Shown here one piece after another: positions 47,916 to 57,351 of a stretch of 64,000 nt of DNA. Every line of letters starts with the position of its first letter. Within the stretch, counting starts at the first letter, position 1. The position numbers and the translations under genes are program-made. Source of the stretch: Oikopleura dioica (taxonomy: Eukaryota > Animalia > Chordata); assembly GCA_907165135.1 (NCBI GenBank), contig OU015568.1, positions 1,302,001 to 1,366,000 on the forward strand, given 5' to 3'. The notes under the pieces are model-generated. The model was not told the origin of the DNA. It did no database searches and saw only the letters and a program-made list of their open reading frames with translations.

Positions 47916-49145
47916 CCGAGCACGGCCATATATCATTATTTACGGCCGCGTAGAGCCTGGTGATGTTCTTTAGAAACCACGTTTTCAGGCCCTCAAAGCT
48001 GATTTTCAAATGACCATAAAAAAAGTTTCCCACATCGGAGAGAAAAACTAAGCCTACCATGAGAATCAGCTCGTCGAGCTCTTTCCAAAGAGGTATAAAT
48101 CGTGAAAGGCACAAGAGGTCAAAATTTTTTTTGCCGACCCTAGTCTACTATAATCGATAAAAAATTATCGAATTTCTCAGAGGCTACGCATAATCCTGAC
48201 CAGCTCCTTTACCTGCATGTTCTTCCGTAACGTGTTCTTGGTAGTTCTTACTAGCTTACACTCCTATGGTCAGAAATTTAATGATACGGGGCCGAGCAAA
48301 TAGACTGAAATGACTTGGCGGTGATTTTAGTTCTTCAACAACCACCGCGACAATCGTTTTTCTTAGAATTTTCCGAACTTGACAACCCATAAAAATGATA
48401 CTCTACCTACTTTTGTTTATTTATGGGTTAACTGTATCTGCTACATTTACAGTTAATTAAAAGAGTAAAATAAATTAATTATCAGTACCACTCGTGTTGG
48501 ACTGGTCATACTTAGGGTTCGCGCCCAAAAATCAAGTGCCCGAAATACTTATTCTATCTTTCTGAATTTTAGATATATGATAGATAAGGGCAAATAAAGT
48601 ATAAATTATTTTAAAATTTATCAAAATTTAAGAGGGTTGAAGAGAAAATAAGCCCCAAAAATGCCAAAAAATGGGTTGACCATGTTAGTCAGCCCAAAAT
48701 TAAAATTTCAAAAAATAGTATGATCAGTAGAGGTTTCTGATCATTTTTTGATAAAAAAATTTTGGGAAGCATCTACGGTTTCCCTAGAATTTACAAAAAA
48801 CTGCCTTTTTTTGGCAATGTTTTTCTGTTACGTGATCATGCGCGCGCACGCGTAACCGCGCGTGATGGGGGTGGCCACGTAAAATTCCAATCAATTTTGC
48901 CGGAAAATTTTAATTCTTCTTTTTAACATAATTAATAAATAACTAATAATTTAAATAATAAAACTATAATAAATATGAGCTCATAATACTTTTATTAATC
49001 ATAAATAATTATAAATTGAAAAATTTTCTCTTTTTATCTTTGAGAAACCTAAAAGATCCTCTAGATTTTTAAAAGATCACCTTACGTAGGTCCACCGCTT
49101 AAAAATCGCTCTATTTTTTTTAAAAGCCCTCTTTTTTTTAAAAAA

Positions 49146-52100
49146 ATGAGAATTACTGTTACGAAGGAGACATTTTGGGGACGGCATGGAAAGAAGATCG
49201 CCAATATTCTTGGCATGCTAGCTTTTATGTTTGGCTACGCATCAGGTAACATTTTGAGATCAAGGGATCCCCCCTGTTTTTTCAACTCTTTATCATGGGT
49301 AATACATTAAAATCACTTCTTCGGACCAAAATCCTGACCCCAATGTTTTTCGTTCTTATCTTGTAGCGCAGTTTCTGGGGAGTCGAATAATATAATTTTT
49401 ATGGGTCGGTAATACTATATTATATCGGGTTCTAGAGCTATAAGTACGTGAAAATAACAAGTACTGAAGCCTCAGAACTCTGAAACTTTCTTTTTAAAGT
49501 ATAGTGAATTTGGGCTCTTTCGAAAGCCCAGCTCAAACTGTGGTTGGGCAGACTATGCATGACGTAAAATTTTGTGAAAAAAATTTTGAGGGGAAAGTTT
49601 TTGGCTCAAAAAATTTTTCTGTTGAGAATTATCGGCTGCCCACCAACTGCCCAACCACAGTTTGAGCCGGGCTTTCCAATGATACCCATTTGTCCATACT
49701 TTCTTTAAAAATTTTCGGAGATACAGGGCTTCACTAGAATTTTTCAATAGGGGCGCCTATGACGTCATTAATGATGACTCAGACCCTGAAAGGTATATGA
49801 ATCGACTCCTCAGGAGCTGCCCTTTCGAATGAGAATAAGAAAGATGGAGGATAGAATTTTTTCCGAAGAAGTGATTTTCATGTATCGGGTCTCTTTATGG
49901 CATATTTAGATTCTTGCCCTCAAAAGTCGTAAAAATGCATATTAATTGAACTTTGCGTAAAAATCGCATTTTTTCCACTTTTCAATATCAACGACAAAAG
50001 ACAAAAAAGGGGGTCTATCGATAGCTTAGAATGCAACGAGAAAGAATATGACGACCGCACTAGAATTTCTGGCCATATATTGGCGGTAGAGAGCAAATTA
50101 AAGCCAGAAAAGGGCCAAAAAAGCATCAAAAATTTTTCTCAGGCAAAATAATTTATCCCAAATGGGCTGAATTTCCAGTCAAAATTGGAAAAAACGGAAA
50201 GGGGGTGATCCCTCAAAGAATCGCCTGTTATAAGACATAAAACAACTATGATCATATCGACCGGGGGATCCTTAACTCGTAATTATGGTGAAGATTTAAA
50301 TTATATTTGTAGGATTTCTCCATGCATTCTTCATGAAGAAGAAAGAAGAAATCGAATTTCAGAAGATAATAGATAATCTGGTAAGTTCGAGATTAACGAA
50401 GTGATACCCCTAAAAATTTTATCTTTATTAACAGTAGCTTATGCCAGCAAAACACAAAAGCTCGTCTCTCGGACATTCTTGAATAAGTAAACATGGGAAT
50501 TTTTTGTCCAACAAAATCTGTCTCTCATACTTTGCAACGAAATCAAAAATTTGAGAAAGAGTCTTTGAGACGGAAAAAAACAAATGAATTATTACGATCA
50601 TTATGTAATATTATCTTGTTTAATGATAGAAGCTCAATACAAGAGCTTCATTCCATGAGTTATTTTTCAAGAAAATGATACACAATTTAATTTTATTTTT
50701 TTCTACGCTTGTCACAGGAAAATGGACAAGAGAATCTTTTGATTAGGTCACGAGATAATACTGCTTTACAGAGGTTTAATTATTATTATCTTTCAAAAGA
50801 TTTGACTGCGCGGTCACCAAATTATGAGAACGAAAGTCTTGAAAGTTCGCTTCGACATATACAGCGTTTTAATCGTAAATTAACGACGAGTAAAACATAT
50901 TGTCACAGTGCTGTTTTTATGACTATTCGGCTCCCAAACCCTTATGTTCGAGATGAATGGACTTACCTGCGGAATGTTATTGGAAGTAAAGTTGTTCTCA
51001 GTCGCTTAGCCTATAATTATTGACACTCCCACTGATTACAAAAAAGAGCTAAAATTGAAATTCTTGCGCCGCAATGCCATGATAAAATTTCAAATGTCGG
51101 AAATTATGACTTGGACAATGATGCCGGAGTTGTTTTTAATTATATTTTAAGGGAAACAGGGGTTAACTTAAAATTTGAAGTTTTCTTAAGCTAACCCTCA
51201 AAGGGATCAAGAGATACCAGATTTTATTGAAGCTTGGTCGCCAAAACTCGCTGAAATTCTTCTTGGTGATACTGACACAGTTTTTACTGTCAGTACAATA
51301 TTGTAATAGGAAGTAAACGCGATCTAACAAATGAATATTATTCAGTATTCGTTTTGAAAAGCAGAAGAAACGTAAGCCTTTTATATTTGACTTGCTTTAC
51401 AAAATGTCGGAGGCTTCTCATGATGAGAGTAAAACAGGTAAAGCTCTATTAAAAATCAATTCTAAAAATGAATTTCAAAGTGCTCCAGGGAATTATGACA
51501 CAATCTAACTATGTCGTCGAATATATTGAATCAGCTTTCGAAAAAGGATTCAAAAAATTATGGAGAATAATATATTGTATTATCTTGCATCCCTTTTAGT
51601 TATTTTTGATGGCGACCAAACAGAAAGGGAAAATAATATAAGAGAAATTCTCCAAACAATCGAATCTATTACTCAAAACTATTTAACTCATCTTGATGAA
51701 ACCGAGAGTGGAGGCGATCATGGATGGTTTCTCGTTTTGGCTAGAAAAAGATAATTTACCATTTTATTTGCTCAAGAAGCTAACAGTGATGTTTGCAAGT
51801 GCCTTCCTTTTACCTGAGCTCGGGTCAAGCGTATTTGACAAGACGAACTGATTTTTGTTTTGGCTTTTCATCGCGCTTGTAATAGAAAGTTGTTAACTTG
51901 CCATAAGAGAAATTCGATCGAAGGCACTGCAATTTGCGCTGTTAAAATTTTGAATTCAGAAAATATTATTTTCTCTATTTCTAGCCATATAAGATGGATT
52001 GCAGCATATAGTAGAATTAGAAATGAGCGACCGGCTTGGAGAAGACGTAACGCAGACTTTTATTGAGATTTTCAAAGAATATGCACTTGAACAAATTTTT

Positions 52101-52209
52101 CACAGCGAATAAAACTCATGATGAATTTTCCAAAATTGCAAGAGCTTTCATTCGTTCAGCTTCAATGTCTTCCTCTCGTTCATTTTCACGTTGTCTCATT
52201 CCCTTATAA
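49146..52209 (+). CDS. Unknown multi-exon cargo gene inside the hAT element (possible type II membrane protein)
   Basis: Exon 1 MRITVTKETFWGRHGKKIANILGMLAFMFGYAS splices in phase (49246-50312) to GFLHAFFMKKKEEIEF. Further open exons at 50709-51020 and 51560-51720; last exon ...SRSFSRCLIPL* ends at 52209. The internal exon chain is not fully resolved. Confidence 0.55.
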
Positions 52210-52212
52210 ATA

Positions 52213-55200
52213 TTAATTGAATGCACAGTTAGAATCGAAGTTGGTCACCTCCCAAATCAACGCTTCTGCCTTTTCTTCATCATCAAGGAGTTTCAGATGC
52301 TCAAATGCTTTGTTTTGTTTTGCGATCGTAAGTCGCCACAGACGTATATCAAGCGTTCGAGTATCCGAAGTTTCAAGGCCCTTCAGAATTCAGAAAGGAA
52401 GGTTTCAGAAGCACTTTTTAATAACATTCAGGGACAGGGCGAAGCCGACCCGAAGGGGAGGCCACGCTCGTTTTTAATTACAGTCAGGAAGAGAGCGTGG
52501 CCTCCCCTTCGGGTCGGCTTCGCTCTTTTTTCATTACAGTAAGGGACAGGGCGAAGCCGACCCGAAGGGGAGGCCACGCCCGTTTTTTAATTACAGTCAG
52601 GAAGAGAGCGTGGCCTCCCCTTCGGGTCGGCTTCGCTCTTTTTTCATTACTGTAAGGGACAGGGCGAAGCCGACCCGAAGGGGAGGCCACGCCCGTTTTT
52701 AATTACAGTCAGGAGAGAGCGTGGCCTCCCCTTCGGGTCGGCTTCGCTCTTTTTTCATTACTGTAAGGGACAGGGCGAAGCCGACCCGAAGGGGAGGCCA
52801 CGCCCGTTTTTTAATTACAGTCAGGAAGAGAGCGTGGCCTCCCCTTCGGGTCGGCTTCGCTCTTTTTTCATTACAGTAAGGGACAGGGCGAAGCCGACCC
52901 GAAGGGGAGGCCACGCCCGTTTTTAATTACAGTCAGGGAGAGAACTAAGCCTCTCTTTACAATTTTTTGAAACCTTGACCAAACGTTCGCTCTAAAATTC
53001 AAATGAGAAAAATTCAGAAGAAATTCCGCTTACCAACAGGGCGATTGTCAGAAACGGCGACAATATTGTGCGGAATTCTATTTTTGTAAGCAGAAATCTC
53101 TGTATATTCTTTCGTCCACTTTTTATTAATACTCTCCCAAGCGACTGAAACTAGCTCGTTCAGTTTTCGGATCCAAGTCAATTTTCGTCGATGTTGATGG
53201 AGAATTACGTTCATTTTGTCAATCAAAAGAAGAATATCAGCCCCGGTTTGTTGATTCTGTCGCTCGGAATGAAGGAATTTTCCTCTTTCCTCAAACATCA
53301 CCATAAGATTATGAAACGCCGTATCGAAATTTTTCCCAAAACAATTGGGTGTAAATTAGTTAAAGTTCAAATAAAATTTAAACCCAGCCCATAATATGAA
53401 GTGAATAGACCCCTGCTTAACACGCTCCATTCTTTTCTCCATATCTGTGTACGCTTTCATAAGTGAGCCGTAAGTTCTAAAATTTTTATTTTGTTATCAG
53501 AACAGGCCTTTCCTACCGTGAATGTCCTCCAGATGATTTAAGAAAAGGCTCGCTTACCGCCCACCAAAACATTGGTATTATAGAAGATTTCAGTTTTGTC
53601 AAGTCGTAATCAGATTTTTCCGAAATGGTAAGAATCTATAAATTTTTGACGCTTAAAGCAAGAGTATATTTTTAATACCATGTTAGCGAATTTTCTGTCC
53701 CGATAATCCCGACAAGTTTTTAAAACAAGTTCTTCGTGTTTAAAAAAATTAAGCACGTTCGCTTGATGGACTGCGTAACTAATCTTTGTTTGGAATAATT
53801 GTTTAAAATACGCATATTACCGGGATCCAATGTCCGAGAGAAAGGGGCGTGTCGAAAACGTTTCAGCTTCGAGAAACGAAGCTTCGAGCCCAAAACGAAT
53901 ATCAGATCTACTATGACTGCATGTTGTTCGACTTCCGAAACTCATTTTTAGACTGTGTAGAAGATTCCAAGTGTCTTTGTTATTGGCTGAATTAAATATC
54001 TTATTGATTTGATGTATGTAGGAAAAAGCCGCTTCGCGGCTAGGTTTTTGTTAATAATTCTGATCTGTTATTTTAACCATTTCCTGCGGGTCGGCCTTTC
54101 GGATTTTCAGCAAGTGCATCTCTTGATTTATCTTCGAACATAAAGTGTTCATAACTTCGAAGATCAAAGTTTGCCGCTTTGCAGTGATCGACATTGCAAT
54201 AATAAAAATTTAAAAGATGCTTAGATCAAAAACTGACCCCTTTCCCACATGCATAACACAATGTAAAGGAATCGCTCCGGAGAAGCCATTTTCTTTAAGC
54301 TTATCAGAAAATAAAATGTTCGCCTTGAGCTGGGCATGAGCTATGAGATTGGATAAATACTTTAAACCCTTTTTATCATACCTGTATCGCTCACTACGAA
54401 CTTAAGCTTTTGAAATAACATCCGATAGAATGGCAATTTTATCAATTCTGCGAAGGCGGATTCTGCAATGTTTTCTGCAGAATGCTTTAACCGGCTTCAG
54501 ATGTTTTTTTAAGGCAATATAAAAAAGCAAGATTTAAGAATCTCAATTGTTTCAAAAAGAATTTTTGAAAAATGTCAATTTGACAATCCAAGTGTGAAAT
54601 TTTAAACTTATTTACCACTTTTTAGTTTTCCCTCTACCGTTCCTTAATTTGCTGAAACAGGGACAAAAGCATAAACCCACCACGTTCATTTGAAACTCCT
54701 AGTGCAGCGACCGCGCGATTTCGCCTACTAGTGCTCCCGTCCATGTGAATGGTCAGGTAACGTGATGAGCGAACAAAACTCTCCATTTGATCATGAAGGA
54801 TTGGGGTAAAGGCCCCAGTTAAGGAGGTGATAAAATTTTGGGAGGGCATAGCAACTGATTTGTCTGGATCGTCAAGAGCATTCTTCAAATCAGGAAAAAG
54901 ATCAGTGAATTCTTCCAACGTCGATTGTATAGTCAATGTTGGAATACCCTTCATCTTAGATATAAGCAGAAATTTGATCAAAGGAGTGTCGTAAGTTGGC
55001 TCAAATTCAATCTTACTAAAAGAAAATAAATTTCAGAGTTACCGTCATTTGACCGCGAATATCGCGGTTTCGATTAACGGAGGTTGCAGGCGGATTCTTT
55101 TTTTGGAAGATAGATACAACTGGGCAGGTTTTCACTTCCAAAAATTCCGGAACAGGAATCGGAGACGGTGTTGGCTCTTGCCTAGGCCTTTTTGACGTTC

Positions 55201-55750
55201 TGGTAGCAGGAATTGTGCAAAAGTGATACTCAAAAGTCCCCATGTTTTCAAGCATTTCTTTTATTTTCTTTGAAATACGCGCAGAGTTCTGCCAAACAGC
55301 TTGTTCCATATCAACTTCATCCCAAATTTGAGCTCGAATATCAGTGTCAAGTATCCAGGACAAAAGGACTCTGTGCGCACCCTTCGTTGGGCGTATAAAA
55401 TTCAACCAAGCATTATTTCCGTCTCGAGTACCTTCTCTCTTAAGTGTCTCTTTTTCTTCCCAATCTCTGAGAGTAATCACGTCACTGTATGTCGTAACCA
55501 AGTATTTTGCAGTTTCGTAACTCATAGGACATGCCGGAATTAGACTGGAAACAAACCCACAAAATATAAGATGAATTTTCATATTTTAGGATTTTGGAAG
55601 AGAAATCCTCGTAGATCCATTTTTAAATACAGTATTATCAAAAATTATGTCATTCTCAGTTGTAGCCCAAACGACTTCTTTTCAATCTTTTTCATGACGC
55701 TGCAAAGTCTGAGAGACCAGCGCGGCTGTTCAAGTCGAGTTTCTTCATGT
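52213..55750 (-). CDS. Diverged hAT-like DDE transposase (multi-exon)
   Basis: YLTIHMDGSTS (first Asp), HSAENIAESAF...KLKFVVSDT (second Asp), PLHCVMH (CxxH motif), SDNRPV|ERTFG (ERxF motif with the catalytic Glu), then LTIAKQNKAFEHL. Start and intactness not confirmed. Confidence 0.8.
52430..52935. repeat. Tandem array of ~112-bp units, each with an inverted copy of a ~30-bp GC-rich motif
   Basis: GCGAAGCCGACCCGAAGGGGAGGCCACGC forward at ~52441, 52553, 52666, 52777 and 52890, with four reverse-complement copies interleaved. Confidence 0.93.
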
Positions 55751-57351
55751 TTCAGAAAATCTTAGCTTAGCTAACGCTGAATTCCGCCTGTGGTAGATAG
55801 ATATGACCAATATCTAGTGCCGTTTTTCGGAGTTTCAATTGCAGTAGAGAGCCAAGAGTCAAACCTGTTTTTGAAAAGTAGCGATTTCCGCCTCTCGCAG
55901 GATTAAAATTTTCTTAAGAAAAATAAGTCTGATCATGGAATTCTCAGTTGATTAAGGTAGATCATCCCCTTATCTTATGCCGTTTTGAGAAAATTTTGTG
56001 TGCCCAAAACATACTTAACAAATTTTTTTTTTTTGAAGTGGCTCAAAAATGAAGATTTTCATGAAATCAATGGTTAGTAAAAATCGCCTCTAAAATCCCG
56101 AAAATTAGCCCGTTTTATAATAGATCGACCAATTTTTAGTAAATAAATATGTAATTACTTAGTTTTCGTCCAAAAAACATTAACAAAAACTCCTTGGAAC
56201 ATTTATAGAATGATTTTAATACTGCTGAATACAAATTCAAAATTTAATTTTTTCATTGAATATCGTGAAAAACAGGTAATCGATTTTTTTCTTACAAAAT
56301 TTTTGAAATTTTAAATTCTGGTCTCCATAGGATCTAGACAAGGGTCTTATCTAACTTCTCAGAAGAAAATAAATTCCGCCCTATATAAGGGTTTCGAGAA
56401 AAGTCTGCCAGGAAAATGGTCATTTTTAGCGATTTCCGAGTTTTCAACGCCATTTTTTACGATTATTTTCTGGAGATATAGAAATCGGCCTTCCATAGGC
56501 ACGAGATAAGGGCCTCAACTCTCTATTAAAACAAAAAATCATTGGTCACTATGTTAGGATTGGGAGAAAAGTCTACCAGAAACTCCCGATTCTTGATATC
56601 TACCTCCTTAAGAGAAAATGACTTTATTTTCAGGATCCTGAAATCAAGGAAGAGAATGGATTCGTGGCGACTCGGCTTGGCCTTCGTGAGTGGAAGATCG
56701 GAATGGCTTTTTAATTAAATTTAGTATATATTTATTATTGTTAATTGGAAAATATTTAAAAAGCCTTAAATAGAAGAATAGAAAATTGTTTTTTTGAAAA
56801 ATAAAAAAATGACAATTATTTATGTTGTATCTTCTATTTTCATTAATATCATTTTAAATCATTTTATAAATCTTTTTAAAAGAAAGAATTTCTTTAAAAG
56901 AAAGAAATACCCATTACGCGCCGACCACCCTAGCCGCGCAAGGAAATGCCTGAGGGCGAACGCGGCGCCGTGCGCTCCGCGCCGCGCAAAGATCGACAAA
57001 AAAAGACCTTCAATGGTCAATTACAGTTTGTTAGTCATCTGCTTCCCATTATTTTTCAATCGAATATTGTTCTCCTCAATCAAAATTATATATATATCCA
57101 AAAAATTTCTGGGAAGCTTTTGACTAACATGGTTTTTGAACATAAATTTCCCTATATCTCTTCAACCCTTTAATTTTTTTTTCGGTGAAATAGATTTTTT
57201 TAACCTTTAAACAGATAAAAAACACCTATAAAAATTTGAAAACAATTGGATTTGTCTATCAAAAGATAGTTTTTTTGGGCGCGAACCCTAGTCATACTTC
57301 GTCGTATTTCTCCCATAATACGCACATGATTGGCCACCAAAAAAAAAATTA

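Follow-up and report, generated by a model that had tools for sequence, protein, structure and literature searches.

Widely used gene-transfer tools have come from hAT elements, the textbook case of a cut-and-paste transposon with one gene, and an 8.8-kb element in the genome of Oikopleura dioica OKI2018_I69 raises the question of whether a transposon of this kind can own a second gene. The element, here called el, occupies positions 48513-57290 of a 64,000-nucleotide stretch (G000:C1:1302001-1366000; hereafter the window), and a window position equals the el coordinate plus 48512. An earlier note, made from the letters of this stretch, had described a hAT transposon with a transposase on the minus strand and a spliced coding region, or cargo, on the plus strand, the latter being either a captured host gene or the accessory gene of a two-gene lineage. 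Both coding regions are present; the boundaries assigned to them were not upheld. We consider it likely that el is a young, apparently complete, divergent hAT-like transposon with two genes, the second of which belongs to the element and most likely serves as a transposition helper. Literature searches turned up no report of larvacean hAT elements that carry accessory genes.

A genome search with the two largest minus-strand open reading frames (ORFs) of el detected paralogs (37-43% identity) at C1:11.30 Mb and C1:11.75 Mb, which are two copies, 99.7% identical to each other, of a 9.4-kb element that we call e2. The terminal inverted repeat (TIR) of e2, TAGGGTCCACGCTCAAAAA, opens with TAGGG like that of el, and the target-site duplications (TSDs) of the two copies are ACTATACA and TCTATGTG. 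Nucleotide similarity between el and e2 is confined to ~70 bp at each end and the interiors are unalignable as DNA; any interior similarity therefore represents conservation at the protein level. On the minus strand, a collinear tblastx chain descending from el coordinate 6896 to 3610 joins the two transposases over 387 aa with 48% identity, and identity at the first, second, and third codon positions is 0.57, 0.68, and 0.38. On the plus strand, four collinear blocks (el 2341-2439, 2533-2613, 2690-2794, and 2832-2879) match with 37-50% identity each, 41% aa identity overall, and a summed E of 3.6e-15. The second gene they mark has the same position and orientation in el and e2, tail-to-tail with the transposase. 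Three of the blocks score 29.9-35 bits against 27.2 bits for the best of 200 dinucleotide shuffles, a single-block comparison that was used in place of the collinear-chain statistic, which was noisy against shuffles (z 3.1). Identity by codon position in the second gene is 0.52/0.69/0.39, the second position being the most and the third the least conserved, as in the transposase.

From exon A onward, the second gene comprises at least 235 codons in five exons, A to E (Table 1), the last of them probable. The C/D intron, 43 nt long, has the same phase and splits a codon at the same position in el and e2, and the D/E intron spans about 170 nt. All exons are open in the four full copies (two of el and two of e2); between the window copy and the second el copy, on contig C5, they show a single difference, which is synonymous, and between the two e2 copies none. 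Searches of the whole genome, in which the exons were used one by one and as profiles, located the gene in both copies of el, both of e2, and a pair of decayed fragments on contig C3, one of which is an internally deleted element retaining cargo exons and the right end without a transposase. No host paralog of the exons was found in the same searches. Because the gene occurs only inside elements and has no host paralog, we prefer an element-owned accessory gene to host capture. The protein would be an orphan belonging to the element and apparently kept by selection in two old sister lineages; it shows no zinc-finger signature. No credible domain was found by Pfam in 10 plus-strand ORF pieces, a PDB sequence search of the exons was blank, and in the ESM Atlas exon A stayed below the recognition threshold, retrieving unrelated phage and bacterial clusters only.

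These comparisons redraw the ends of both genes. The transposase stop had been placed at 52213; the in-frame stop at 52213-52215 falls within a 46-nt GT-AG intron that e2 retains in identical position and phase, the upstream exons ending in ALIWE and ELVWK and the downstream exons beginning with GMRQRE and GMRNRE in el and e2, respectively, and the transposase frame runs on to the TGA listed in Table 1. The plus-strand ORF whose stop, at 52209, had been taken for the end of the cargo is the antisense of the last transposase exon. Conservation supports a second gene of ~1 kb (50718-51754) instead of the ~3 kb first proposed, and a start near 49200 would have to cross a nested repeat; the N-terminal hydrophobic segment attributed to the protein was not located. 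The two stop codons, reported as 3 bp apart, are 361 bp apart in our model (51754 to 52116), and the argument that the 3′ untranslated regions must overlap rested on misplaced gene ends. A weaker form of that proposal comes from putative poly(A) signals: in both el and e2, the first plus-strand AATAAA past the second-gene stop adjoins the transposase stop, which the first minus-strand AATAAA follows at a distance of 40-50 nt, an arrangement in which the two mRNAs might overlap by roughly 60-95 nt.

The element itself is confirmed. Its 19-bp TIRs (TAGGGTTCGCGCCCAAAAA) match perfectly at both ends, and GTCATACT on both flanks forms a perfect 8-bp TSD. The second full copy, C5:10817590-10826822, is 99% identical to the window copy; extra units of a repeat array in its interior make it 455 bp longer, and its perfect TSD (AATATCAG) is unlike that of the window copy. 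The insertion in the window is thus recent, because a 99%-identical full copy with a different perfect TSD lies on another scaffold. Shorter elements of the family are found on several contigs, with ~500 bp at each end 79-88% identical and with unrelated interiors; non-autonomous ones of about 1.2-1.3 kb lie on C5 and C3. We examined the TSDs of ten family insertions (two el copies, two e2 copies, and six derivatives): all are flanked by separate 8-bp TSDs, of which nine are perfect and one, that of derivative L029, is off by one base, and their target consensus is nnYATRnn, with a palindromic center and AT at positions 4-5 in all ten. No subterminal 7-mer was enriched above the AT-rich background. 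The separate TSDs and the 99%-identical copies indicate repeated transposition of the family and a young window copy. The earlier note had read the perfect TIRs and TSD as a sign of recent insertion, and this holds. Of the two options that it offered for the second gene, the accessory gene of a two-gene lineage is the one supported: full-length copies sought elsewhere (one of el on C5 and two of e2) all contain the second gene, which is neither confined to the window copy nor burdened with disabling mutations, and its exons are conserved as protein in e2.

The transposase gene has small exons and introns of Oikopleura size. In a word-based search of 5.8 billion proteins, the only match to its exons was P0001, an annotation model covering part of e2. 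A profile of the exon with the first catalytic Asp (A5), built from five genomic lineages, matched 25 proteins among 1.84 billion, two of them partial O. dioica gene models and the rest from marine metagenomes, and none of the 25 has a Pfam family. Several el exons, among them the first-Asp and FGSR blocks, could be aligned with two intronless relatives, P0014 (483 aa) and P0026 (551 aa). The second-Asp block of el is likewise conserved in e2; its correspondence in P0014 and P0026 was read by eye, as was the rest of the motif chain.

hAT elements are recognized by an 8-bp TSD, a short TIR beginning 5′-YARNG, and an RNase H-like core split by a large all-helical insertion, as in Hermes, and by a C-terminal dimerization domain (Pfam PF05699); an N-terminal BED-type zinc finger is common among them and not universal. 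The TSD of el has this length, and its TIR start, TAGGG, fits YARNG. An AlphaFold2 model of P0026, made from a 28-sequence alignment, has a mean predicted local distance difference test score (pLDDT) of 65, with residues 40-260 at 70-92. In a Foldseek search with this model, Hermes supplied the top 12 matches (E 4e-6 to 9e-5), followed by ISCth4 (E 2.5e-3) and the P element (E 9e-3), and in VIA-align Hermes was again the top match (Z 9.0; 217 residues, including the helical insertion). The ESM Atlas look-alikes of a transposase exon, which we treat as a lead only, all belong to hAT RNase H-like families (scores 0.84-0.88). We therefore call the el family hAT-like by its TSD length, TIR start, and the fold of its relative, and not by Pfam domains; the hAT label of the earlier note is kept to that extent.

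Several observations weigh against the reading of el as a hAT-like transposon with a helper gene of its own, and the first group of them bears on the superfamily. The fold argument relies on a model of mediocre quality, made for a distant relative, and the template modeling scores to Hermes are low (0.25-0.29). Pfam hAT domains go undetected in the el family yet are detected in other O. dioica hATs: eight minus-strand ORF pieces of el gave nothing credible in Pfam and no hAT domain at E up to 1, and a genome-wide six-frame search found PF05699 in 15 other places and none in el or e2. Among those 15 are the transposases at C1:636914 and C1:732634, which have no tblastx similarity to the el-family transposase. 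In a search for a BED zinc finger, Pfam was blank on the 189-aa first exon, where el and e2 have just three invariant Cys in common, and PDB sequence searches were blank as well, whether the query was an exon profile, an exon by itself, or either of two full-length relatives. The target consensus nnYATRnn also differs from the hAT target patterns nTnnnnAn and nnnTAnnn. All this could mean that el belongs to another or undescribed superfamily with 8-bp TSDs (P-like, Mutator-like, or new), in which two genes are perhaps the rule. We regard that as quite improbable: the first 12 Foldseek places all go to Hermes, with E values 100-1,000 times better than those of IS256-type and P transposases, Hermes aligns best in VIA-align, across the helical insertion, and the TSD length, the TAGGG start, and the feature-based look-alikes all point to hAT. 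There is, in addition, a 1-bp indel between the window and C5 copies at window position 53329 (el 4817), on the upstream edge of a 113-aa transposase ORF (53017-53355). It alters the reading frame over the opening ~10 codons of this ORF; the site may or may not be exonic, and one of the two el copies may be defective through a frameshift there.

The remaining difficulties concern the second gene. Its model is partial at both ends, with a candidate start-codon exon that has its ATG at 50333 and a consensus donor and with a last exon that is only probable, and the 5′ edge of exon C is either 51214, after a 52-nt GT-AG intron that drops four conserved residues, or 51204, after a 43-nt GG-AG intron. 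Exon A had no match in the 5.8-billion-protein collection among proteins of 60-192 aa, the range to which that word-based search was limited, and an AlphaFold2 model of exon A alone, from a two-sequence alignment, was poor (pLDDT 54). Three bulk RNA runs and one single-cell run gave no reads on 49800-55700, a result that is uninformative and no valid test of expression, since there was no control and the populations are deeply diverged; no match to the el stretch was found among indexed RNA runs. Such features would suit a gene that is a nonexpressed, decaying relic, or plus-strand conservation arising from cis-acting DNA or RNA rather than from protein. We consider this unlikely in view of the second-position maximum and third-position minimum of conservation, which is exactly the pattern of the transposase and a frame-specific signal not expected from cis-acting DNA, of the frames open in four copies and the conserved intron phase, and of the opposite strand, where the same blocks yield no el/e2 match of 24 bits or more. 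Capture of host gene fragments occurs in several superfamilies of DNA transposons, and the absence of any recognizable transposon-related domain in the protein would also fit Pack-type capture, in which the plus-strand exons are a host gene fragment or copy with no role for the element. That explanation, which the earlier note had entertained, is very improbable. The host paralog it calls for was sought genome-wide with single exons and profiles and not found; the gene stands in the same place and orientation in two lineages whose interiors are dissimilar as DNA; and its divergence, with coding-type substitutions, is near that of the transposase (41% against 48% aa identity). A capture must then be old and have come under purifying selection since, and it therefore amounts to an accessory gene. 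Association with the transposase is close without being strict: the expectation that the two always occur together holds in el and e2 and fails in the C3 derivative and in three more distant transposase lineages of the genome, in which the second gene was not seen and which make it less than universal in the family. The second gene was likewise not found by tblastx on metagenome contigs of the relatives, which are too short to reach it (3.5-6.7 kb, plus a Tara Oceans scaffold). Finally, the helper function assigned to the protein is pure analogy. On balance, we still favor an element-owned second gene in a hAT-like transposon.

Table 1. Features of el and its flanks, in window coordinates
Feature	Position	Strand	Remarks
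Left TSD copy	48505..48512		GTCATACT, 8 bp
Left TIR	48513..48531	+	19 bp; first bases TAGGG
Left subterminal region	48513..49050		~540 bp; 79-99% identical to non-autonomous family relatives
Nested miniature inverted-repeat transposable element (MITE)	49302..49886		585 bp; inverted ends of its own; repeated many times elsewhere (94-96% identity)
Second gene, exon A	50718..50985	+	89 codons + 1 base; most conserved motif CHSA..TIRLP.P..R
Second gene, exon B	51049..51161	+	After 63-nt GT-AG intron
Second gene, exon C	51214..51302	+	Phase-2 donor common to e2
Second gene, exon D	51346..51428	+	Acceptor at the codon position of e2; alternative donor 51438
Second gene, exon E (inferred)	51600..51754	+	Probable last exon; TAA 51752-51754; e2 match weak, by eye
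Transposase gene	52116..55582	-	At least 10 exons; ATG at 55582
Last transposase exon	52116..52202	-	Charged tail; TGA 52118-52116
Transposase intron	52203..52248	-	46 nt; GT-AG; phase 0; kept in e2
Transposase exon	52249..52380	-	44 codons; maybe C-terminal hAT-like motif (read by eye)
Array of 56-bp units	52415..52943		Alternating orientation; 113-bp period; 4.7 copies
Transposase conserved blocks	55175-55408, 54742-55032, 54112-54177, 53820-54002, 53667-53768, 53128-53337, 52264-52362, 52122-52211	-	
Transposase block, second Asp	54377-54439	-	Motif VVSDTG
Transposase block, first catalytic Asp	54688-54744	-	Motif HMDGSTS
Second nested repeat	56080..56611		532 bp; many copies elsewhere at 90-93% identity
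Right subterminal region	56790..57290		~500 bp; common to non-autonomous relatives
Right TIR	57272..57290	-	19 bp
Right TSD copy	57291..57298		GTCATACT, 8 bp

Two nested small repeats account for ~1.1 kb of the 8.8 kb of el, and the first of them, the MITE, is missing from the short derivatives of the family. The array of 56-bp units, ~0.5 kb long and of a hairpin-repeat type, sits in the last-but-one transposase intron, and the C5 copy has about four more units of it than the window copy. A related array makes up most of a 3.7-kb non-autonomous family member (L025:2065-5767; C3:2357564-2361266) with the TSD GCTATATT, where it is long and is tied by tblastx to the intron array of el; similar arrays occur at C1:8.65 Mb, C1:9.17 Mb, and in L049. 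Internally deleted derivatives on the 2.9-Mb contig C3 (L022:7788-9997, that is C3:1659787-1661996; C3:1668056-1669320; and C3:1642440) keep exons A-B with 96% DNA and 82-92% protein identity, part of the exon E region, and the right end, and have lost the transposase. On contig C4, a distance of 39.6 kb separates a left from a right family end of matching orientation (C4:10618955-10658527; ends in L030:2956 and L031:3028), both flanked by the identical 8-bp sequence CAGATAAA; the pair looks like one 39.6-kb element or a macro-transposition carrying the intervening DNA.

Relatives of the transposase form a Pfam-invisible clade in marine plankton metagenomes, represented on a Tara Oceans scaffold (L058) and on JGI and ENA contigs (L053-L056), and some of them are intronless over about 480-550 codons. 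The best match to the A5 profile lies on a 21-kb ENA metagenome contig (L057:9839-13216), in a 1125-aa ORF in which one 40-residue segment recurs ~20 times and which resembles a tandem array that expanded from part of a transposase gene. The el transposase clade is thus invisible to curated domain libraries and extends to marine plankton, which means that standard annotation misses such elements, and this blind spot fits the 44% of repeats that are unclassified in the OKI2018_I69 assembly (PMC8008620).

What the sequences show is a mobile hAT-like element whose two protein-coding genes are both under purifying selection. In the mechanism that we propose, the transposase would cut and paste the element, producing 8-bp TSDs with a preference for nnYATRnn targets, and the orphan protein would, by analogy with other two-gene transposons, help or regulate transposition. 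Its binding partner could be the transposase or the long subterminal regions; a part in DNA recognition is proposed because the transposase has no recognizable zinc-finger DNA-binding domain. The element probably needs its second gene, to judge from the sequence of the distant sister element, which has kept it too. A stronger version, which we hold to be possible and rather doubtful, is that el is a true two-component hAT whose transposase either lost a sequence-specific DNA-binding finger or never possessed one, in which the orphan protein recognizes the 500-bp subterminal regions or controls transposition, and in which overlapping mRNA 3′ ends may tune the two genes; the conservation together with the transposase across diverged lineages that such a system implies is found in el and e2. 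An orphan second gene, retained over long divergence in a hAT-like lineage, points to a helper or regulator of hAT transposition that has not been described before.

With the hAT elements Hermes, Ac, Tol2, and Buster, el shares the 8-bp TSD, the short TIR beginning with TAGGG, a single DDE transposase, short derivatives that share its ends, and, judging from the P0026 model and its best match to Hermes, an RNase H-like core with a large helical insertion. It differs from them in lacking the Pfam dimerization domain, the BED finger, and detectable similarity to solved or curated hAT proteins, and in having a conserved second gene, conserved subterminal regions of ~500 bp, and a central AT target preference. 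In arrangement, el resembles MuDR of maize, in which the transposase gene mudrA and the helper gene mudrB converge tail to tail and the second protein is a lineage-restricted orphan; the two genes of el likewise converge inside the TIRs, and its second protein is an orphan. MuDR belongs to the Mutator superfamily, with TIRs of ~200 bp and 9-bp duplications, and the likeness drawn here is one of arrangement, no relation in sequence being expected. A candidate functional analogy is offered by PIF/Harbinger, a cut-and-paste transposon that needs a second element-encoded protein, a Myb-like DNA-binding protein, as the orphan protein of el might be needed; PIF/Harbinger differs in its 3-bp duplications, in belonging to another DDE family, and in the Myb/SANT domain of its second protein, whereas no domain is recognizable in the protein of el. 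A further functional model for the orphan protein of el is TnpA, the second protein of En/Spm.

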